Shown here piece after piece: positions 1,370-28,452 of a DNA stretch of 64,000 nucleotides. Where the stretch lies: positions 159,880-223,879 of the IMG/VR virus record IMGVR_UViG_3300035698_007246; one strand, given 5' to 3'. Every line of letters starts with the position of its first letter. Position 1 is the first letter of the stretch. Under the pieces are notes generated by a model, which did no database searches, had not been told where the DNA came from, and saw nothing but the letters and a program-made list of their open reading frames with translations. The position numbers and the translations under genes were made by a program.

Positions 1370-2015
1370 CTTCCAATTTTTTATTTTTAAACTGTTCCAT
1401 TACATCTTCGGCTTTAACTGGCTTTACATTTGTTTTAGTTGGTTCACGGTCAGCTTTTTCTTTTTCAAGCAATAATTTATTCTCATCATATTCATCTGAA
1501 GTCATACCAAGTGCAAGAGCAAGCGATGAACCTTTATGGTCATCACTCAGTTTATCTAAAAATTCATCAATGACTTCATCCGCATTTTTATCAATAACAC
1601 CATCATCACCAGGAACACAAATTTCGGGTTTTACTTTGCCTTTGGTATCGGTTGATTGTAATTGTTGGAAGAATTTATCAAATATTTTGCCTTCTTTACA
1701 TTCTTGTAGTTTTTCTTTCAATGCTCTATTGACAAGTTCATTAAAAGTTATATCATGTTCATGTGCTATTGTAGCAAGATAACTGAATTCATGGTCACTT
1801 AATCCAAGTTCAATCTTTTCAGTACAATTTTCAGAATCATAATCATTTTCGATTCCAACATGGTCATCAAAATTTACAGGATATCCACATGCTTGAAGAA
1901 ATGATTTAAACATTTCACACAAGTCATCCATTGTTGCGTCATTATTTTCTGTTGATATCTGAACATCACTTTCAAATACAACACCATCATTTGCAGTCTT
2001 TACAAATTTAAACAT
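1335..2015 (-). CDS. Hypothetical acidic protein
   Basis: ORF; GGAGG Shine-Dalgarno precedes ATG at 2015. Confidence 0.65.
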   Translation of the reverse strand: MFKFVKTANDGVVFESDVQISTENNDATMDDLCEMFKSFLQACGYPVNFDDHVGIENDYDSENCTEKIELGLSDHEFSYLATIAHEHDITFNELVNRALKEKLQECKEGKIFDKFFQQLQSTDTKGKVKPEICVPGDDGVIDKNADEVIDEFLDKLSDDHKGSSLALALGMTSDEYDENKLLLEKEKADREPTKTNVKPVKAEDVMEQFKNKKLEDEVYDYEEYLE

Positions 2016-2283
2016 TTTCTTTCCTCCACGCGTCATTATTATAATCATTTATTTCACTCATGGTCTCTTCAACCATAAAAATTTCTATTTTATAAACATG
2101 TCCATCTGTTGCATATGATTTTTTGATTTCGGTCACTTTACATGTATCATATGGCAAAGAAGGATGAGAAATATTCTCACCTTCTTTTGGTATAACTGGA
2201 AATGAAAAATCAATCATCATATTATCTATTTTTGGTTCTGGTGATTCTTGGTTATATTCTTCAATCAGACATACACAATTCAT
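2008..2283 (-). CDS. Hypothetical protein
   Basis: ORF starting immediately after the RNR stop (ATG 2283). Confidence 0.55.
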   Translation of the reverse strand: MNCVCLIEEYNQESPEPKIDNMMIDFSFPVIPKEGENISHPSLPYDTCKVTEIKKSYATDGHVYKIEIFMVEETMSEINDYNNDAWRKENV

Positions 2284-2284
2284 A

Positions 2285-5200
2285 TTAAGCCCCACATCCA
2301 GAATATCCACAATCATTACAAACAAAACATCCACTTTGCATAGCAATACTATCACTTTTACATGTAGGACATATCATTCCGACTATTGTTGTACCATTAT
2401 CAATTGTTTCAGATACAAATTTTCTAATTGCAGTTAATAATGTTGATACATTGTCGCCTTCAATACCTTGTAATGAAACAAGAATATCTTGTCGTGCTAT
2501 GTTATGTCTCAAACAAAGACTAACCATTCTACCCAATCTATTTGCATTAGTATCACCAAGGCATTTGTCCCAGGTGTCTTCTACAATCTTAACACTAATT
2601 CCACAGTCAATAGCAAGCACACATAAACTTTTACAAGCCTTAGTACATGCTCTTGTATCATTTTTAGAATTTGTGTTAATCCACAGTGCCATTGGATACT
2701 TCATATCAACATCATCAGGGAAGTAACTGAAATTAATGTAGAATTTCATCCCTTCACGTTTAATCGTCCTTGTAGGGCCGTTAATGAAGGTCTCAGGGAG
2801 TTTTACGCCCTTCTTTATGATAGTTTTTTCCTCTTCAGCACTTTCAATCTTAGAAAGAACGGATTCCATAGAACCTGTACGGTATGTTGTTACACCAATG
2901 AGTCCTTTTTTCCATGCTTCAAAATATAATTCTTTAAATTTTTCAAATGAATATTTATTTGGTAAATTTATTGTTTTCGAAACAGACTGATTACAGTAAT
3001 ATTGAACTACTTCTTGAATGTTAAGATGGTCTTCAATTTCCAAATCATCTGTTGTGACCAAGAAATCAGCTTTCTTATGTTCTGGATAATTTTCAAGAAT
3101 CCAAGCATAACCATAATCACAAAGCGTATACATTTCACACAAACCTCTATTATGCGGTTCGTAGTAATATTTTGTTCCTTCATAGTATCCCTCCCAGTAA
3201 GTAAAATCCTTTTTCTTTTTTTCTTTAAGGATTGTTTTTACATTATCGGAATTCATGCCTTCAGGAAAAGCACATATCACTTTTCTCTCAGATTTCAAAT
3301 CAAACACAGGTTCAATTCCATTTGATACATTATCACACACCACAGATGAATTACCTAATGGTGGATTGGTTGTGGTTTTAGCATTTCTGAGACCATATTG
3401 TTTAATTAATTCTTTTGTTTCATCTGTTAATCTATCAGATTTGAAATAAGGTGTCTGACTAAATAAATCATAATTGTATAATGGGAATGACCCTTTTTCT
3501 TTAGCCAATAATGCACTTGATTGCATTGTAATGTTTTCCTTAAGTTGTTTAATTTTTTTAGTAAACGTAACAGCTTCTTGTGAGTTATATTTAATACCCA
3601 ACATAACCAATGTAGAACCTAATCCATTAATACCCATACCAAACTGTCTTAGATTTTCTACAGCCCATGCATATGATGGTAATGGCAATTCAGTCAAATC
3701 ACACACATTATCTAACATTCTTGAGTATGTAACGATGTCTTTTTTATACAATTCCAAATTAAAGTATGGAACATCATTACGGATTTCTACATACATTGTC
3801 AAATTAAGTGAACCTAATAGACACACAGTAGACATTATTGGATTACCTGGTATCTCACCACATCCTCGACTCACATACCCTTCGGTATTCCAATCATCAG
3901 CAGTTGGTTCATGCAAATCATAAACATCACCAAATCCAAGAAATTCAATTTCTTTTATTTTAGTTTTCCACTTATTTCCTGTTAATGATGTAGTTTTGAT
4001 AATTTGTTTTAATTTTTCATTTTTTTCATCATGACTAAGTTTATGTACAAATTTATAAAAATTTAAAATTGAATCATTATCAATAACACCTTCAAAGATA
4101 TCATGCCGCCTCACAACATCACGTCCATATATTTTTGCTGTCTCACCTTTTTTACCACACAAATATTTCTTATAATCACACCCTGCGGTAAGCATTATAT
4201 GTTTTACCAATAAATGTAATTTTTCTGATATATTTTTAAATCTAACTTGTGGATATCGAGAAGTTAAATTCACATTCCCATCAGATGAAATTAACCCATC
4301 TATCAATCCAGATAAAAAATCATCATTAAAGTTTAACAATTTCATAACATCAAAATTGGATTTATCATTAGCATCAATACCGAAAACATCAAATAATAGT
4401 TTAATCTTCCCTTCGGTATTTATAGCATAATATCTCTCACAATTTCCATCAGATTTATCGATTCTATAATCAAAACCAAACCTGTTATACAATTCAATTA
4501 TATAATCATTATTTTCATTTGAATCTGTTGATATATTAAAGTTTTTATAATTAGAAAAACATCCATCTCCAAAATATAATCCAAATAACATTCCAACATC
4601 TCTGATGTCGAATAGTTGCTCGCCATTTATAGCATCAACAGATATTACGCCATTATCCACACATGATGGATTATACTTAATCATATCATAAGGTTGTTTT
4701 CTTACGTTATCACCAACATTTAAATATTTTAAACGTGTGTTATTGTCCCACCGTTTTCTATTTTCTGATGTTCCATTTTGAGTATGAAAAATATGACCTT
4801 CAGTTACACCCTGATAAAACCCATCTGTGAAATGAACTCTATAAATTGGCTGATTTTCATGAACTTCTATATTATCAACACTACCATGCCCTAACGTTGT
4901 TTGAATTTCTTCACCGACTTTTACATCTTCAACTCGTTTTAGTCCGTGTTTAGTAGCTACTAATGTTCCTTTTACAACACAAGGATTTGTAGCATTACAT
5001 TCACCCAAATAGAGAATTGGGTTGTTTTTATTCATGTTATCAACGAATACTATACCCGGTTCAGAGCGATTGTATGTAGATTTCATAATAAGGTCGTAAA
5101 GTTTCTTAGCTTTCACACGTTTTACTACTTTACCATTCCATATTAAGTCCCACATAGCATTATCAGCAACAGCATTCATGAAATCATCACTCACTGCAAC

Positions 5201-5956
5201 ACTCATGTTGAATTTAGTTAGCTTACCAGACTCTTGTTTTGCTCTAATGAACTCTTCAATGTCAGGGTGCCATACAGAAAGACATCCCATCATAGCACCT
5301 TTACGTATATCTTTATCACATTCACCAAAATATTCTTTAAGCTCTTCAACAGAAGCATAGTTTTTTAATGAATCAAGGTATCCATCATTGTCACCTTTAA
5401 CAATACAGTCAGAAACCTTGTCCCAAATCTCCATATAAGAGATAACTCCGGGGTGTCTAACACCAGTTCCTTTGATTAAACTACCACGAGGTCGTATAAA
5501 GTCAAAGTTTATTCCATACCCACCCTCGGAAGCAAGAGTTTTTGCTTGTTCCATGATAGATAAGAAGATGTTTACGAGTTCATCTGGTGTATCAGGTGTA
5601 GTGATTATTATTTCATTCTTGAAATGTTCATTCTGTCTTATGTATTTTATAATGGCATTACTAACAGGACCATTAATAAAACAGTTCATTAGTGTAGCAT
5701 TGTAATAATCAGTTCCTATATTGGTTGTAATTCTACCACCCGGTGAACATTTAATACCTAATGGATTCCCCATACTATCAAAACGTATCATTGTTTCAAG
5801 AAAAATGGGATACCAATATTCAGAATCTACTTCATTATTAGCAAGTGCCCTTGCTATTCTTTCAAATGTCCCAAGGGGGGTCTCACCATCATACTGATAT
5901 TTTCCCTTCCAATTATTATATGCAATTTTCGTTTTGAAAAAGTTTTCATCACGCAT
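2285..5956 (-). CDS. nrdJ: Adenosylcobalamin-dependent (class II) ribonucleotide reductase with intein
   Basis: SPGGRI, TLMNCF, GGYGINF, RKGAMM, HPDIEEFI, EPGIVF, TNP[intein]CGE, CLLGSLNL, NGIEPVF, VSKTIN, GVTTYR and C-terminal CxxC..CxxC; no nrdB neighbour. Confidence 0.9.
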   Translation of the reverse strand: MRDENFFKTKIAYNNWKGKYQYDGETPLGTFERIARALANNEVDSEYWYPIFLETMIRFDSMGNPLGIKCSPGGRITTNIGTDYYNATLMNCFINGPVSNAIIKYIRQNEHFKNEIIITTPDTPDELVNIFLSIMEQAKTLASEGGYGINFDFIRPRGSLIKGTGVRHPGVISYMEIWDKVSDCIVKGDNDGYLDSLKNYASVEELKEYFGECDKDIRKGAMMGCLSVWHPDIEEFIRAKQESGKLTKFNMSVAVSDDFMNAVADNAMWDLIWNGKVVKRVKAKKLYDLIMKSTYNRSEPGIVFVDNMNKNNPILYLGECNATNPCVVKGTLVATKHGLKRVEDVKVGEEIQTTLGHGSVDNIEVHENQPIYRVHFTDGFYQGVTEGHIFHTQNGTSENRKRWDNNTRLKYLNVGDNVRKQPYDMIKYNPSCVDNGVISVDAINGEQLFDIRDVGMLFGLYFGDGCFSNYKNFNISTDSNENNDYIIELYNRFGFDYRIDKSDGNCERYYAINTEGKIKLLFDVFGIDANDKSNFDVMKLLNFNDDFLSGLIDGLISSDGNVNLTSRYPQVRFKNISEKLHLLVKHIMLTAGCDYKKYLCGKKGETAKIYGRDVVRRHDIFEGVIDNDSILNFYKFVHKLSHDEKNEKLKQIIKTTSLTGNKWKTKIKEIEFLGFGDVYDLHEPTADDWNTEGYVSRGCGEIPGNPIMSTVCLLGSLNLTMYVEIRNDVPYFNLELYKKDIVTYSRMLDNVCDLTELPLPSYAWAVENLRQFGMGINGLGSTLVMLGIKYNSQEAVTFTKKIKQLKENITMQSSALLAKEKGSFPLYNYDLFSQTPYFKSDRLTDETKELIKQYGLRNAKTTTNPPLGNSSVVCDNVSNGIEPVFDLKSERKVICAFPEGMNSDNVKTILKEKKKKDFTYWEGYYEGTKYYYEPHNRGLCEMYTLCDYGYAWILENYPEHKKADFLVTTDDLEIEDHLNIQEVVQYYCNQSVSKTINLPNKYSFEKFKELYFEAWKKGLIGVTTYRTGSMESVLSKIESAEEEKTIIKKGVKLPETFINGPTRTIKREGMKFYINFSYFPDDVDMKYPMALWINTNSKNDTRACTKACKSLCVLAIDCGISVKIVEDTWDKCLGDTNANRLGRMVSLCLRHNIARQDILVSLQGIEGDNVSTLLTAIRKFVSETIDNGTTIVGMICPTCKSDSIAMQSGCFVCNDCGYSGCGA
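3863..4981 (-). mobile_element. Intein (373 aa) with LAGLIDADG homing endonuclease in the RNR NP|CGE motif; atypical C-terminus ...SRG
   Basis: Starts CVVKGTLV; block B TEGH; LAGLIDADG motifs GLYFGDG and GLISSDG; block F VYDL; removing it restores TNP-CGEIP. Confidence 0.85.
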
Positions 5957-5974
5957 TCATCATTCTCCTTTAAC

Positions 5975-6460
5975 TTATTTAAAAATGTGTTTTTCTGTTA
6001 GAATTTTAAATTCATAACCATGTTTTTTACAATATCGCACGGTGGCAATCCACTTATTATTATTTTTAATCCACCTTACCATTTCATAAGTGTAACGTTC
6101 TTGCCGTTTCTTATTCTTATTCATTGGTTTTTGGGGTGGAAGAGTTTGTTTGTGTGGTTTTATTTCAATTATATATTTTGTCACCTTCCCGGTCTTGTCT
6201 CGTATATCAGCGATTACATCCGGGTAATATCTATGAAATTTATTATCAACTTCAAACAAATAAGGAATTGCTATTGATTCAGAACTCCACCGTAAAATAT
6301 TTTTATTGAAATCCGCCCAAACAAACACTCTTTTTTCATACGAACTTCTATAATATGGGTCACCTTTGCCCATATATTTTGATTTATTCACAGGGATATA
6401 AGTTCCCTGCAAATAATTTGTATTACTTTTCATCCTCATCCCCAATAGGAGACAAAGCAC
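5975..6460 (-). CDS. gp4: Head completion nuclease (T4 gp4-like, TnsA-type PD-(D/E)XK)
   Basis: KYMG..YRSSYE..WSSESIAIPY..HRYYPD..IEIKP..NNNKW..FKILTE. Confidence 0.85.
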   Translation of the reverse strand: MLCLLLGMRMKSNTNYLQGTYIPVNKSKYMGKGDPYYRSSYEKRVFVWADFNKNILRWSSESIAIPYLFEVDNKFHRYYPDVIADIRDKTGKVTKYIIEIKPHKQTLPPQKPMNKNKKRQERYTYEMVRWIKNNNKWIATVRYCKKHGYEFKILTEKHIFK

Positions 6461-6474
6461 TCATCACTTATAAA

Positions 6475-7554
6475 CTAAATCAATTCTTTAAAATACCTTG
6501 ACACCTGATTCCAGTTAGACATATGTTGTGTTAATTGATGTTTCATAAAAAATGACATAATTTCAGAACCATTAGTTGGTTTGAAATTTTCATCTTTATG
6601 TGTTGTATATATATTTATGATTTCATTTTTTATATCATTTGGAATCTTTTTCAAATCAATCAAGTTTATATTTCTTTTATAATTAATATGCACTTGAGCT
6701 TTATCTTTTTTGATAAAATATTCAATTTCATCCTTCGTCACCACAGGTCTATTATCTTCAGGTGGTAGACAATCTTCTCCAATAGGAAGAAGACAATACA
6801 ACAATGTGTCTTCATCAGACATCCATTCACGTCTTTTCATTTTACGTGTAATTTTGTATTTAAGATTATCAACAAAGTCATCAAGCCCAGTTTTTATTAT
6901 TTTTTCAGCAGTCATTTTACCAACACCATATCTAACACCAGTAATAAAATCAGAGTGATCTCCTGTTAAAATCTTCATCTCTAATTCAATTGCAGGATTC
7001 ATACATTCAACAATTTCTCTTGATTTTGGGTCATATTGATGAACATTAGGATTTACCAACAATTGACGCATATCACCATCATTAGAAACAATTGTAATAT
7101 CATCAGTTTTGAAAATTTCATTAGCACACACACCTATAATATCATCACCTTCTGTATGAGGTGCTTTGATAACATATATATTTGTAAATGTTTTTTTAAT
7201 ATCATTAATAAACTCATCAAATATTCTAAAAAAGAGTTCCCAATCTATCGGCAATTTACTTTTTGCCTTTGCAGACTTTCTGTGAGCTTTATAATTGGGA
7301 TATATGTTATATCTCCAACTACCCTTCTCATCAAAAGCGAGAACCACGGTATCAGGATTAAATTTTGCAATCACATTAAATATATCATTTAAAAATGCAT
7401 GTTTCCATAGTGCAAATGTTGTTATATCATCAGGGTTACGGTAGATGTCAGAATATAAACATCTATACGCTATGTTGTGACCATCCACGATTAAAACTTT
7501 TTTCAAACTATTTTCAGAAGTCTTATCACCAAAAAGTTCACTTAATTTACACAT
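6475..7554 (-). CDS. rnh: T4 RNase H / 5'-3' exonuclease
   Basis: VDGHN, SWRYNIYPNYKAHR, EGDDIIG, SNDGD, LTGDHSDFITGV (FEN-type). Confidence 0.88.
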   Translation of the reverse strand: MCKLSELFGDKTSENSLKKVLIVDGHNIAYRCLYSDIYRNPDDITTFALWKHAFLNDIFNVIAKFNPDTVVLAFDEKGSWRYNIYPNYKAHRKSAKAKSKLPIDWELFFRIFDEFINDIKKTFTNIYVIKAPHTEGDDIIGVCANEIFKTDDITIVSNDGDMRQLLVNPNVHQYDPKSREIVECMNPAIELEMKILTGDHSDFITGVRYGVGKMTAEKIIKTGLDDFVDNLKYKITRKMKRREWMSDEDTLLYCLLPIGEDCLPPEDNRPVVTKDEIEYFIKKDKAQVHINYKRNINLIDLKKIPNDIKNEIINIYTTHKDENFKPTNGSEIMSFFMKHQLTQHMSNWNQVSRYFKELI

Positions 7555-25423: not shown

Positions 25424-25840
25424 TTGTTTATGAAAAATGAACTATTTTTAGAAATTAGAAAACAAATTGATGAAGAATTAAAGATTACACCTGAAACTGT
25501 TAGAGAAAAAACTCTCAAATCACCTATGTTGTCATCAAGATATCACAATGTATTGATAAGTGAAAAACGTGTGTTAAATGGATTGGAAAGTAAAAAAAAT
25601 AAAATATTTGGAAAATTATATCAACATTACCGATATAGAAGTGAATTTGCTATATCAACAAAACTTGAAGCTGAAACTTTTATATTTTCGGATGATAAAT
25701 ATCTTGCTATAGAAGCACAATGTAAAGAACAAAAAATTATTGTAAATTATTTTGAAGAGCATATTAAAATTTTTAATAAACTTGGATTTGCATATAACAC
25801 ATATTTGGGATTTTTAAAATTAACTCAAGGTGGAGAGTAA
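25424..25840 (+). CDS. uvsY: Recombination mediator UvsY
   Basis: Helical 138 aa, SPMLSSRY...Y...FIFSDDKY; directly upstream of uvsW. Confidence 0.7.
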   Translation: MFMKNELFLEIRKQIDEELKITPETVREKTLKSPMLSSRYHNVLISEKRVLNGLESKKNKIFGKLYQHYRYRSEFAISTKLEAETFIFSDDKYLAIEAQCKEQKIIVNYFEEHIKIFNKLGFAYNTYLGFLKLTQGGE

Positions 25841-28452
25841 TGGACGATATTATTTCTATTGAAAAATATAATAATACTTATTTTAAAATACATTGTAACG
25901 AAGAGCAGACGTATGAATTGTATTCTTATTTTGAATGTTTGAGTACTGGTTATCAATTTGATGATAAATTCAGAGCAGGTCATTGGAATGGAAAGATTTC
26001 ATTTTTTAATAAAAAAGCTGGTAACTTGTTACCAATTGGATTGTTAAATAAACTTGTTGCATTTGCAAAAGAATTCCATTATCAATTAAAACTTGATTTC
26101 GATATAGAAGATTTTTATAATGATATTGAAGAGTCTCACATGAAAGAGTTTTATAACATCATATTCAACAATGTAGACCTATTCCCAAGGGATTATCAAC
26201 ACGAGTGTATATATACTGCCCTAAAGCGTAAAAGAGGCGTTATAGAGTCTGCTACGGGTTGTCATGAAAAGGGAACTAAAATATTATTAAACAGTGGTGA
26301 ATTTAAAAATGTTGAAGATATTGTTGTTGGTGATATTTTAATGGGTGTTGATGAAAAACGAACGGTTTTAAAAATTATTTCTGGTAATGAAAAAATGTTT
26401 AAAATAATTCCAAAAAAAGGTAATTCTTTTGTTGTTAATGAAAATCATATTTTACATTTAAAATTTACAAATGGACGATATAAAAAAAAATTAAAAAAGG
26501 ATTTTATTAATATTTCTGTTTCTGATTATTTAAAACAAAATAATCAATTTAAACATGAAACGAAACTTGTGTTTAACAATAAAGAACTCGTTTTTGATAA
26601 TGATTATAAAAATTCAACTAAGTTGTCACCATATTTTGTTGGGTTATATTTAGGTGATGGACATGTTCATAGATGTGGTATAACAACTATGGATAATGAA
26701 ATTATTGGAATTATAAATGAGGTTGCTAATTTATTTAATAGTGATATAACAATAAATAAAAAATTTGTATATTCTAAGGCAAAATCTTATTTTTTTACTG
26801 GATTTGGTGGCAAACAACATCCAATTATTGAAGAATTTAGAAAATTGGGTTTAAATTTTGGTGTTTCTAAAAAATTTAAAAAATGTTCATGTGGAACCAA
26901 ATTTATACCAGATGAATTTAAATATGGTTCTATTGATGAACGGTATAATATAATTGCAGGACTTATTGATAGTGACGGATATTTGGGCAAGTCATATTAT
27001 GATTTCTGTGTAAAATCTAAACAATTATGTGACGATTTTGTTTTTATATGTCGAAGTTTAGGATTTTATGTTTCATGTAAACAAAAAATTGTTAATGGTT
27101 GTGTGTATTATAGATGTTGTGTTCAAGGTGATATTGGAAAAATACCATGTAAAATTAAAAGAAAGCAATTTAAAAATGAATTAAATAGAAATAAAAGTGT
27201 GTTTGTTCATGGTTTTGATATTGAATGTGTTGGTGAAGATGATTTTTATGGTTTTTCGTTAGATGGTGACAAATTGTATTTTACTGATGATTTTTGTATT
27301 CATCATAATTCTGGGAAGTCATTGGTTATTTATTCGTTAATCCGGTTTATTATGAGTTGTGTTAAACGAAAAATATTATTGGTTGTTCCAAATGTTAGTT
27401 TAACCATGCAAATGTTTAATGATTTTTCAAAAGATTATGGTTGGGAAGGTGTTTCATCATTTGTTAGTGTGTTGCACCATAAAAGTAAACGATATGACCC
27501 AGAGAAACCAATATTGATTTCAACATGGCAATCTATTTACAAAAATGCACCAGAATTCTTTTCTCAATTTGACGCTGTTATTGTTGATGAAGTGCATTCA
27601 GCAAAATCAATTTCAATACAAACCATATTAAAACATTCAGTTAATGCTGAATATCGTATTGGTTTAACAGGGACATTACCTGAAGATGAAATTGATTTAA
27701 ATAATATTTTTGGATTTATTGGACCCAAATTGATTTCTGTCAAAAGTGAAGACTTGATTGATAAAGGTTTCTTATCAAAAATCATTATTGCTAATTTACT
27801 TTTACAATACCCAAAAGATATTATTGATGAGAATAAAAAACGGATAAAACATAAAATAAGTGGAGATACCGCACCGTACAAAGATGAATATGATTTTATC
27901 ATAAATTACCCAGAACGAAATAAAGTGTTTGATTATATAATAAAAAATATAAATACTTCTGATAATGTTTTGATTTTATGTGAGCGTATTGACCATTTAA
28001 AGTTAATTTCTGAGCATATCAATGGTTTGTGTGGTTCTTTTGGTCGGAAAATGTTTATGATACATGGGAGTGTTGACGCAAATAAGCGAGAAGAGATAAG
28101 GCAGTTTACGGAAAAAAATAATGGTGTTGTTATTGTAGCTACATATGGAACGATGTCTACAGGTGTTAATATTAAAAAATTACATCATATAATTGCAGCA
28201 AGTTCTTATAAATCTAAGATTAAAGTTCTCCAATCCATCGGTAGAGGAATGAGATTACATGATTCTAAAAATAAAATGGTTTGGTGGGATATAGTTGACG
28301 ATATGCGTTGGGAAAAACGAAAACGTAAAGACCAAAAAGATAAATACGAATATAACTATATGTTCAAACAGTTTCTCACAAGGTTAAGATATTATAATGA
28401 GCAGAATTTTAATTATTTGAATAAAACGATAAACTTAACAGAAATACAATAA
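25840..28452 (+). CDS. uvsW: UvsW SF2 helicase with intein
   Basis: PRDYQ, SATG[intein]SGKS, STWQS, VDEVH, GLTGT, STGVNIK, LQSIGRGMR. Confidence 0.93.
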   Translation: MDDIISIEKYNNTYFKIHCNEEQTYELYSYFECLSTGYQFDDKFRAGHWNGKISFFNKKAGNLLPIGLLNKLVAFAKEFHYQLKLDFDIEDFYNDIEESHMKEFYNIIFNNVDLFPRDYQHECIYTALKRKRGVIESATGCHEKGTKILLNSGEFKNVEDIVVGDILMGVDEKRTVLKIISGNEKMFKIIPKKGNSFVVNENHILHLKFTNGRYKKKLKKDFINISVSDYLKQNNQFKHETKLVFNNKELVFDNDYKNSTKLSPYFVGLYLGDGHVHRCGITTMDNEIIGIINEVANLFNSDITINKKFVYSKAKSYFFTGFGGKQHPIIEEFRKLGLNFGVSKKFKKCSCGTKFIPDEFKYGSIDERYNIIAGLIDSDGYLGKSYYDFCVKSKQLCDDFVFICRSLGFYVSCKQKIVNGCVYYRCCVQGDIGKIPCKIKRKQFKNELNRNKSVFVHGFDIECVGEDDFYGFSLDGDKLYFTDDFCIHHNSGKSLVIYSLIRFIMSCVKRKILLVVPNVSLTMQMFNDFSKDYGWEGVSSFVSVLHHKSKRYDPEKPILISTWQSIYKNAPEFFSQFDAVIVDEVHSAKSISIQTILKHSVNAEYRIGLTGTLPEDEIDLNNIFGFIGPKLISVKSEDLIDKGFLSKIIIANLLLQYPKDIIDENKKRIKHKISGDTAPYKDEYDFIINYPERNKVFDYIIKNINTSDNVLILCERIDHLKLISEHINGLCGSFGRKMFMIHGSVDANKREEIRQFTEKNNGVVIVATYGTMSTGVNIKKLHHIIAASSYKSKIKVLQSIGRGMRLHDSKNKMVWWDIVDDMRWEKRKRKDQKDKYEYNYMFKQFLTRLRYYNEQNFNYLNKTINLTEIQ
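26260..27309 (+). mobile_element. Intein (350 aa) with LAGLIDADG endonuclease in the UvsW Walker A loop
   Basis: CHEKGTKIL...NENHIL...GLYLGDG...AGLIDSDG...FYGFSLDG...IHHN|S. Confidence 0.92.

Follow-up and report, generated by a model that had tools for sequence, protein, structure and literature searches.

Inteins that end in glycine at the radical cysteine of class II ribonucleotide reductase

Introduction

Protein splicing by every accepted mechanism (classes 1 to 3) ends with cyclisation of the last residue of the intein, and reviews up to 2023 list only Asn, Gln, Asp and Glu at that position (for example PMC4031507). Glycine cannot cyclise. An apparent intein that ends in glycine therefore raises the question of whether it is misread, dead, or removed in some other way. 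Such an intein lies in a phage ribonucleotide reductase (RNR) gene within a 64,000-nucleotide stretch (hereafter the window) of IMG/VR virus record IMGVR_UViG_3300035698_007246, positions 159,880 to 223,879. An initial annotation made from the sequence alone reported an RNR intein at NP|CGE ending in Arg-Gly before the essential +1 Cys, with an intact open reading frame, block A Cys, block B TxxH and both LAGLIDADG motifs, and argued that a single sequencing error was unlikely. It offered three possibilities: a non-canonical splicing chemistry, a recently inactivated nrdJ, or an RNR that tolerates a retained insert.

Anatomy of the intein and its host gene

The gene occupies window positions 2285..5956 on the minus strand and encodes 1223 aa including the intein. 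It is a class II (adenosylcobalamin-dependent) RNR gene, nrdJ: the Pfam RNR barrel domain (PF02867) is split by the insert, and the NCBIfam model TIGR02504 (NrdJ_Z) scores 395 bits with the intein present, against a cut-off of 399.95, while an intein-less homologue of 849 aa (P0082) scores 421 bits. The intein is protein residues 326-698 (3863..4981, minus strand; 373 aa), and its context is NATNP | CVVKGTLVATKHG ... DDWNTEGYVSRG | CGEIPG. The N-extein (4982..5956, minus strand; aa 1-325) ends in NATNP and is 90% identical to P0082 over 322 aa. The C-extein (2285..3862, minus strand; aa 699-1223 plus the stop codon) is 85% identical over 525 aa. The junction is colinear, so that precise excision restores the NATNPCGEIPG of intein-less homologues. 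The only alternative boundary that keeps NPCGE shifts the insert by one residue, and it was rejected because the insert would then start with Val and end with Cys, which has no chemistry behind it.

The N-terminal splicing machinery is canonical. Block A Cys1, the N-terminal nucleophile (4979..4981, minus strand), is invariant in a 66-member family alignment. Block B is T60-E-G-H63 (4793..4804, minus strand), with Thr in 62 and Ser in 4 members and His in 66/66, and the same residues occur in canonical relatives. Block F includes VYD (intein 353-355), whose Asp355 at F:4 (3917..3919, minus strand) is invariant in 66/66 members and is the commonest residue at this position in class 1 inteins (PMC4031507). 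The C-terminal end is different. Canonical inteins have His at F:13, and here the residue is Asp362 (3896..3898, minus strand). Block G ends Ser371-Arg372-Gly373 (AGT CGA GGA; 3863..3871, minus strand) in place of x-His-Asn. It is followed by Cys+1 (TGT; 3860..3862, minus strand), which is both the splice nucleophile and the thiyl-radical Cys of the NPCGE motif. The His residues at G:6 and F:13 are common in class 1 inteins but not obligatory, and both are absent.

A predicted LAGLIDADG homing endonuclease domain (3962..4654, minus strand; about intein 110-340) is nested in the insert. Pfam detects LAGLIDADG_3 (PF14528) and gives a weak Hint_2 match at residues 325-355. The two motifs lie at intein 132-142 and 223-237 (window 4556-4588 and 4271-4315), and their Gly and Asp residues are 92-97% conserved in the family. 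An AlphaFold2 model of the intein (pLDDT 92.4, pTM 0.92) has a predicted HINT fold: the best Foldseek matches are PI-SceI (1ef0, E 3e-18), the TliVMA intein, PI-PfuI and gp41-1, with I-DmoI and I-AniI matching the endonuclease, and a profile search of the PDB also finds PI-PfuI and gp41-1.

The terminal glycine is real and conserved

The observation in the initial annotation holds in every detail. A contig from another metagenome, 3300031227_006016, is 100% identical over 4452 bp including the junction, and at least at the level of assembled sequence an error is all but excluded. A second intein in the same window, in UvsW, is canonical (His-Asn|Ser, encoded CAT AAT), so decoding and assembly are normal in this phage and an odd genetic code was rejected. 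RNA-level removal was also rejected, since an Rfam search of window positions 1500-7000 found no RNA element or intron and the insert is an in-frame HINT plus LAGLIDADG protein.

The initial annotation had named a search for other inteins with this ending at the same site as a check, and 268 distinct homologous inteins ending in Gly were found, all at this site, so the ending is far from chance. They come from phages, Chloroflexota, Patescibacteria, Rokubacteria, DPANN and halophilic archaea, including an entry named for the cultured Thermoflexus hugenholtzii. The family occurs in genomes of 80 species, including closed chromosomes. The last residue is Gly in 268/268. Position G:6 is Arg in 225, Gln in 30 and another residue in 13, while G:5 is Ser in 126, Gln in 108, Asn in 28 and His in 6. 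Position F:13 is Asp in 266/268 (the other two are one-residue alignment offsets) and in 80/80 genome loci. Across 96 DNA loci all four Gly codons are used, the preceding Arg is encoded by six codons, and Ser is encoded by both of its codon families, which shows selection at the amino-acid level. A profile of the last 40 residues was searched against 1.84 billion proteins to look for Gly-ending inteins at other sites or in other host proteins, and none was found: every Gly-ending hit with a following Cys is at C(G/A/S)E of RNR. Searches of 50,697 deposited phage genomes with tblastn and megablast gave no hits, and searches of the searchable literature found no description of a Gly-ending intein.

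Is the interrupted gene functional?

One rival reading is that the intein does not splice, with nrdJ dead or working as two cleaved fragments and the element persisting only as a selfish homing endonuclease. Splicing of any family member is so far inferred from conservation and selection rather than directly observed, and the chemistry of Gly would be consistent with this reading, but the comparative evidence makes it very unlikely. Cys1, His63, Asp355, Asp362 and Gly373 are invariant over sequences as little as 30% identical. About 34 mini-inteins (125-150 aa; for example P0056:350-496) have lost the endonuclease but keep the x-x-Gly end. The exteins have no frameshifts or stops, and the intein is present or absent among close RNR alleles. 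Relative to the comparison sequence L003, dN/dS is about 0.07 for the N-extein and about 0.13 for the first 170 codons of the C-extein, and it is 0.21 for the intein; these values are rough because dS is saturated, but they indicate purifying selection. The family also occurs in many cellular genomes, in an enzyme that is normally essential. These data contradict a recently inactivated nrdJ. An RNR that tolerates a retained insert is very unlikely, because Cys1, TxxH and the block F Asp remain invariant and the insert sits at the radical Cys. The interpretation in the initial annotation is thus partly supported: of its three alternatives, the comparative evidence favours non-canonical splicing chemistry, but it missed the proposed partner residue, Asp362, and the role it suggested for the upstream Asn in WNTEG is not supported. 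That position (residue 365) is Ile in 182 of 268 members and Asn in only 44, and cleavage there would leave eight extra residues in the NPCGE loop. Cyclisation of Arg372 to a delta-lactam was likewise rejected, as it would leave a Gly inserted in NPCGE and Arg is replaced by Gln, Val, Lys, Leu or Met in about 16% of members.

A proposed mechanism: relocation of the catalytic carboxylate

Other inteins at the same site suggest how the terminal Asn may have been replaced. At this one site the pair (F:13, G:7) is (Asp, Gly) 171 times, (Leu/Phe, Asp) 10 times, and mostly (His, Asn/Gln) otherwise. Asp362, Arg372 and Gly373 are the only family-specific differences from canonical relatives, while Cys1, Thr60, His63 and Asp355 are shared. 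The Asp-ending inteins (P0114, P0191, P0192, P0209, P0210, P0212, P0220 and P0225) have Leu or Phe at both F:13 and G:6, share the block F/G sequence TW(I/V)TNG..S.. with the Gly family, and are its nearest relatives in that sequence and in trees. The trees are weakly resolved, however, and disagree on where the Asp-enders sit: the tree that includes the endonuclease nests five of them inside the Gly family, while the HINT N-terminal tree places them outside. A codon path Asn AAY to Asp GAY to Gly GGY would consist of single-base steps. In the AlphaFold2 model the last two strands are at intein 363-366 and 369-372 with a two-residue turn, which puts residue 362 across the hairpin from residue 373, although this geometry rests on secondary-structure pairing and not on measured distances. 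It is consistent with reports that the block F C-terminal strand forms a hairpin with the last strand (PMC2807308) and that the F:13 His acts on Asn G:7 and the scissile bond (PMC4031507).

The best explanation, held about as likely as not, is that this is a functional, mobile intein from a large, previously unremarked family that occupies only the NP|CGE site of class II RNR. In this view it must excise itself to give an active enzyme but cannot use cyclisation of a terminal Asn, Gln or Asp. Steps 1 and 2 (an N-S acyl shift at Cys1, then transfer of the N-extein to Cys+1) are probably canonical, as inferred from the invariant Cys1, TxxH and F:4 Asp. For step 3, the three residues that normally serve Asn cyclisation have been replaced together, and the proposal is that the carboxylate that resolves the branched intermediate has moved from the terminal residue, where the related Asp-ending inteins carry it, to F:13 on the neighbouring strand of the last beta-hairpin. 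The terminal Gly would leave the space its side chain would fill, so that the Asp362 carboxylate could reach the Gly373-Cys+1 carbonyl and act either as a nucleophile, forming a transient mixed anhydride, or as a general base for water. The polar G:5 residue (Ser/Gln/Asn/His) and Arg372 would orient the Asp and stabilise the oxyanion, and a final S-N shift would give NATNP-CGEIPG. The analysis itself establishes the anatomy, the conservation, the covariation, the predicted HINT fold and the selection on exteins and intein, whereas the occurrence of splicing, the role of Asp362 and the activity of the endonuclease are inferences. There are also points against the proposal. An intermolecular-style attack by a carboxylate on a backbone amide has no precedent in inteins, and Asp at F:13 also occurs in at least one canonical His-Asn intein (the second intein of P0114), so Asp there does not by itself imply new chemistry.

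The main rival is double acyl-shift splicing, in which the Gly373-Cys+1 bond itself undergoes an N-S acyl shift. This would free the alpha-amine of Cys+1 to attack the N-extein thioester on Cys1 directly, leaving the intein as a Gly thioester on Cys+1 that is then released by hydrolysis or by attack of its own Cys1, which could give a circular intein. A Gly immediately before the nucleophile is the classic context for autoproteolytic N-S and N-O shifts, as at the Gly|Cys site of Hedgehog and the Gly|Ser/Thr/Cys sites of Ntn hydrolases and pyruvoyl enzymes (PMC4031507 draws the same parallel for step 1). Gly is the least hindered residue for thioester formation, the family is restricted to a site with Cys at +1, and an invariant Asp362 could serve as the acid/base. 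Hedgehog also has a HINT fold, but its Gly|Cys is at the N-terminus of the HINT domain, whereas here it is at the C-terminal junction and the downstream fold is RNR. The HINT fold activates the bond at its own N-terminus, and no intein is known to do the same at its C-terminal junction. Direct aminolysis of a thioester by an alpha-amine is also slower than transthioesterification, the invariance of Cys+1 is uninformative because RNR function fixes it anyway, and the model does not explain the apparent swap of the carboxylate's position relative to Asp-enders with a hydrophobic F:13. It is considered possible but unlikely.

A further, improbable alternative is that the intein carries out steps 1 and 2 itself but the Gly-Cys+1 bond is cut with outside help from the C-extein's own catalytic Glu at +3 in CGE, the folding RNR barrel, or a host or phage protease. 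At least three different non-Asn endings occur at this one site (Gly, Asp, and Arg with a block F:4 Cys), which hints that the site or its exteins may tolerate or assist unusual resolution, and Glu+3 is invariant. However, canonical His-Asn inteins also occupy the site, the spread across phages, bacteria and archaea makes a shared trans-acting protease unlikely, and the invariant Asp362 argues for an intein-borne catalyst.

Relationship to known inteins

Class 1 inteins with a LAGLIDADG endonuclease, such as PI-SceI (Sce VMA), PI-PfuI (Pfu RNR) and the canonical His-Asn inteins at the same NP|CGE site (P0069, P0070 and P0224), share the in-frame insertion at a conserved catalytic site, the HINT fold with a nested LAGLIDADG domain (predicted here), Cys1, TxxH, F:4 Asp and Cys+1, but the Gly family lacks their defining step-3 nucleophile. 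Inteins with an atypical C-terminal Asp or Gln have been described (Amitai, Dassa and Pietrokovski, 2004, as cited in PMC4031507), with Pab PolII and CIV RNR as the Gln examples; the Asp example is reportedly the Carboxydothermus hydrogenoformans RNR intein. Asp and Gln can still cyclise onto their own carbonyl, whereas Gly cannot. Class 2 inteins (KlbA type) have Ala1 and direct attack by the +1 Cys, which the invariant Cys1 excludes here. Class 3 inteins lack Cys1 or Ser1 and carry a WCT motif with Cys at F:4 (PMC2807308), whereas Cys1 and F:4 Asp are present here. They are nevertheless a precedent for moving a catalytic nucleophile from a terminal position into block F and thereby defining a new mechanistic class, although class 3 relocates the step-1 nucleophile and keeps the terminal Asn, and here it is the step-3 function that appears to have moved. 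Bacterial intein-like (BIL) domains occur in variable, non-conserved host proteins, usually without a homing endonuclease. This element does not fit that description, as its host is a conserved essential enzyme, the insertion is at the catalytic loop and an endonuclease domain is present; a BIL structure (2lwy) is only a weak match (E 1.6e-4).

Implications

A large, ancient and evidently selected family ending in Gly would mean either that step 3 can be done by a residue that is not the terminal one, or that splicing can follow a different order of acyl shifts. More tentatively, and somewhat less likely than not, the Gly-ending RNR inteins could be a fourth mechanistic class, widespread in phages, bacteria and archaea and evolved from Asp-terminal inteins through the single-base steps Asn to Asp to Gly, in which the branched intermediate is resolved without any cyclising terminal residue, by the F:13 Asp acting across the last beta-hairpin on a Gly-Cys bond or alternatively through a Gly thioester. 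Such a family could supply protein-engineering tools, such as an intein that leaves or uses a C-terminal Gly, or whose C-terminal cleavage is controlled by one internal Asp. It would also widen the definition used by intein-finding software, which often requires a terminal Asn, and would explain why these RNR genes are annotated as “hypothetical” or “LAGLIDADG endonuclease”.

The intein and its host gene

The minus-strand ORF at 2285..5956 of the window encodes a 1223-aa protein in which Pfam recognizes a ribonucleotide-reductase (RNR) barrel domain interrupted by a LAGLIDADG domain, with a weak Hint match at residues 325-355. NCBIfam places the host protein in the adenosylcobalamin-dependent class II family (TIGR02504). 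The insert comprises protein residues 326-698 (3863-4981 of the window, 373 aa) and sits between NATNP and CGEIPG: it begins CVVKGTL and ends DDWNTEGYVSRG, with the final codons AGT CGA GGA preceding TGT. The initial annotation had described an RNR intein ending in Arg-Gly instead of His-Asn, and that observation holds exactly. The surrounding DNA is that of a T4-like phage with 31% G+C, encoding a gp20-type portal, UvsW, a family B polymerase, a DnaB-like helicase, RNase H and ThyX. It is identical to part of a 223,879-bp IMG/VR contig (IMGVR_UViG_3300035698_007246), and among 50,697 deposited phage genomes there was no megablast match to the first 20 kb of the window and no tblastn match to the intein.

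Multiple lines of evidence indicate that the insert is an intein within an intact gene. An AlphaFold2 model of the insert with 10 flanking residues, built on a 133-sequence alignment, is confident (pLDDT 92.4, pTM 0.92), and its best structural matches are PI-SceI, the TliVMA intein, PI-PfuI and gp41-1, while the middle domain matches I-DmoI-type LAGLIDADG enzymes; a sequence-profile search agrees with these assignments. The closest homologue of the exteins is an intein-less 849-aa protein (P0082) that is 90% identical over the N-extein and 85% identical over the C-extein, has no indel, and reads NATNPCGEIPG across the junction. Precise excision would therefore restore a normal NrdJ. Rfam finds no intron or other RNA element in 1500-7000.

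Nor does the unusual ending appear to be a sequencing or assembly artefact. A contig from a different metagenome is 100% identical over 4452 bp, including the junction. The window also contains a second intein that serves as an internal control: a 350-aa insert (26260-27309, plus strand) within the UvsW helicase gene (25840-28452) that splits the Walker A motif between ESATG and SGKS, begins with Cys, carries a Hom_end-type endonuclease, and ends canonically (FCIHHN, with His-Asn encoded by CAT AAT) before Ser.

A family of Gly-ending inteins

The Gly ending defines a large family. First, a region-restricted search with the window protein returned 98 proteins, of which about 69 have an intein 30-70% identical to this one at the same site (NP↓CGE, the arrow marking the insertion point), and every one of these ends (S/H/N/Q)(R/M/Q)G before C(G/A/S)E. 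Second, a profile of the last 40 residues searched against 1.84 billion representative proteins gave 146 hits, about 110 of them Gly-enders, all at the NP↓CGE site of RNR and none in another host protein. Third, a search seeded from an archaeal member added 98 more, all ending in Gly. In total, 268 distinct proteins end in Gly. The hosts are diverse: 16 IMG/VR viral contigs; genomes of 80 species, including Patescibacteria, many Chloroflexota (with closed chromosomes among them), Rokubacteria/Methylomirabilota, Methylococcales, Nitrospinota, Gemmatimonadales, Poribacteria, Halobacteriales and Thermoplasmata; DPANN archaea; and an NCBI entry named for the cultured species Thermoflexus hugenholtzii. 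The scan of genome contigs that yielded the 80 species used a pattern containing VSRGCGEQP, so its 80/80 count of terminal Gly is by construction, and only its codon diversity, its Asp at block F:13 and its taxonomic range are informative. Many of the NrdJ genes that carry the Gly-ending intein are 1600-2500 aa long and hold two to four inteins at different sites (P0319, the 2488-aa T. hugenholtzii protein, as well as P0304, P0312, P0260, P0013 and P0020). The other inteins end canonically where inspected, for example the second inteins of P0114 and P0141. Two short proteins of about 110 aa (P0205 and P0232) resemble the family's block F/G but have Gly instead of Asp at F:13, end in QA or GG, and lack the following Cys; they look like decayed remnants.

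Several characteristics imply that selection acts on the ending. In the 16 viral and 80 genomic loci the terminal Gly is encoded by GGA, GGG, GGC and GGT in comparable numbers, Arg uses all six of its codons, and Ser uses both the AGY and TCN families. About 34 family members are mini-inteins of 125-234 aa that have lost the endonuclease but keep the ending. Between the window and a 70%-identical intein-bearing relative (L003), dN/dS is about 0.07 for the N-extein, 0.13 for the C-extein and 0.21 for the intein, although dS is at or beyond saturation and these figures are rough. In the same comparison synonymous divergence is about 1.0 in the intein (3863-4981) but about 3.0 in the N-extein (4982-5956), so the intein may be younger than the host-gene split, acquired by homing or transfer; saturation makes this uncertain as well. 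Residues of the endonuclease motifs are 92-97% conserved, and close RNR alleles with and without the intein coexist, as expected for an element that still homes. The initial annotation had offered three readings (a non-canonical splicing chemistry, a recently inactivated nrdJ, or an RNR that tolerates a retained insert), and this interpretation is partly supported: a dead gene or a tolerated insert would not keep Cys1, His63, Asp355, Asp362 and Gly373 invariant over this much divergence.

Residues that distinguish the family

To identify what differs, the HINT parts of 155 Gly-enders were aligned with 24 Asn-, Gln- and Asp-enders from the same site. The N-terminal apparatus is shared (Cys1, Thr60, His63 and block F:4 Asp355), while the family-specific invariants are Asp362 and Gly373, plus the strongly preferred Arg372. 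In the standard block nomenclature these are F:13, G:7 and G:6, and the review literature assigns exactly these three positions to step 3 of splicing: His F:13 activates Asn G:7, His F:13 and His G:6 stabilize the tetrahedral intermediate, and Asn G:7 cyclizes (PMC4031507; PMC10663303). The initial annotation had instead singled out an upstream Asn, Asn365 in WNTEG, but this position is Ile in 182 of 268 members and cannot be essential.

The most informative relatives are a small group recovered at the same site by the same profile search (P0114, P0191, P0192, P0209, P0210, P0212, P0220 and P0225), which end S(L/F)D before CGE, that is, with a terminal Asp, and have Leu/Phe at F:13. Their block F reads E-T-L-T-W where the Gly-enders read x-x-D-T-W. 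One cluster member is from a Bacillota MAG, and the group is probably the lineage of the reported Asp-ending RNR intein. Across 193 inteins at the site, the pair (F:13, G:7) is (Asp, Gly) in 171 and (Leu or Phe, Asp) in 10; the rest are canonical pairs, mostly (His, Asn/Gln), and two apparent exceptions are one-residue alignment offsets. Terminal Asp is an accepted variant that can still cyclize (PMC4031507). The carboxylate therefore appears either at the terminal residue or at F:13 with Gly at the terminus, and never at both or at neither. A different lineage at the same site of related NrdJ proteins (P0071:325-714 and P0086:324-714, plus cluster members P0240-P0243) ends in Arg (SVAR or VARR before CGE) and has Cys at block F:4 (DVYCL) while keeping Cys1, giving another terminus that cannot cyclize and that remains unexplained.

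The trees are short and only partly consistent. A tree of the N-terminal 100 residues of the HINT domain puts 49 of 50 sampled Gly-enders in one clade (SH-aLRT 89), and its sister clade holds all eight Asp-enders together with Asn- and Gln-enders. A tree that includes the endonuclease domain instead nests five Asp-enders inside the Gly family, which probably reflects exchange of the endonuclease domain. While the order of events is therefore unresolved, a single origin of the Gly type from an Asp- or Asn-type ancestor is the simplest reading, and the path AAY (Asn) to GAY (Asp) to GGY (Gly) needs only single-base steps.

A possible mechanism for branch resolution

In the predicted structure the last two strands are intein residues 363-366 and 369-372, joined by a two-residue turn at Glu367-Gly368 (Gly368 is about 98% conserved). 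Extending the antiparallel register pairs 364 with 371, 363 with 372, and 362 with 373, so that Asp362, Trp364 and Ser371 would lie on the same face as the missing side chain of Gly373. This placement is a topological inference from the register of the strands, but it agrees with the published description that the block F C-terminal strand forms a twisted hairpin with the last strand that carries the C-terminal junction (PMC2807308).

Given these features, we propose that steps 1 and 2 are canonical and that the branch is then resolved by the Asp362 carboxylate acting on the Gly373 carbonyl, either as a nucleophile (forming a mixed anhydride analogous to the cyclic anhydride proposed for terminal Asp) or as a general base for water. 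In this view Gly provides the room, and the polar G:5 residue and Arg372 help orient the Asp and stabilize charge. The anatomy of the insert, its conservation, the selection on exteins and intein and the covariation of F:13 with the terminal residue come directly from the sequence comparisons, and the HINT fold from a confident model; that any member of the family splices, that the endonuclease is active, and that Asp362 takes part in catalysis are inferred from these data alone. The main rival is an N-S acyl shift at the Gly-Cys+1 bond itself, a dipeptide context typical of Hedgehog, Ntn hydrolases and pyruvoyl enzymes, after which the freed Cys+1 amine would attack the Cys1 thioester and the intein would later be released from a Gly thioester. 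That scheme explains the invariant Gly and is compatible with an acid/base role for Asp362, but it does not explain the reciprocal pattern of Asp/Gly versus Leu/Asp. Help from the extein or from a trans-acting factor, no splicing at all, and artefact are progressively less likely.

Relationship to described inteins

By its predicted fold, its position, the residues of its N-terminal chemistry and its inferred mobility, the insert is an intein, but it fails the defining requirement of classes 1 to 3 for a cyclizable terminal residue. It is not class 2, because Cys1 is present, and it is not class 3, because F:4 is Asp and not Cys. Reviews from 2014 and 2023 list only Asn, Gln, Asp and Glu at the terminus (PMC4031507; PMC10663303), and full-text literature searches found no report of a Gly-ending intein, although most subscription journals and InBase lay outside their reach and an earlier mention cannot be excluded. 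The family is of high interest because it is conserved, widespread and, through its natural mini-inteins, directly testable, and it may represent a new mechanistic class.
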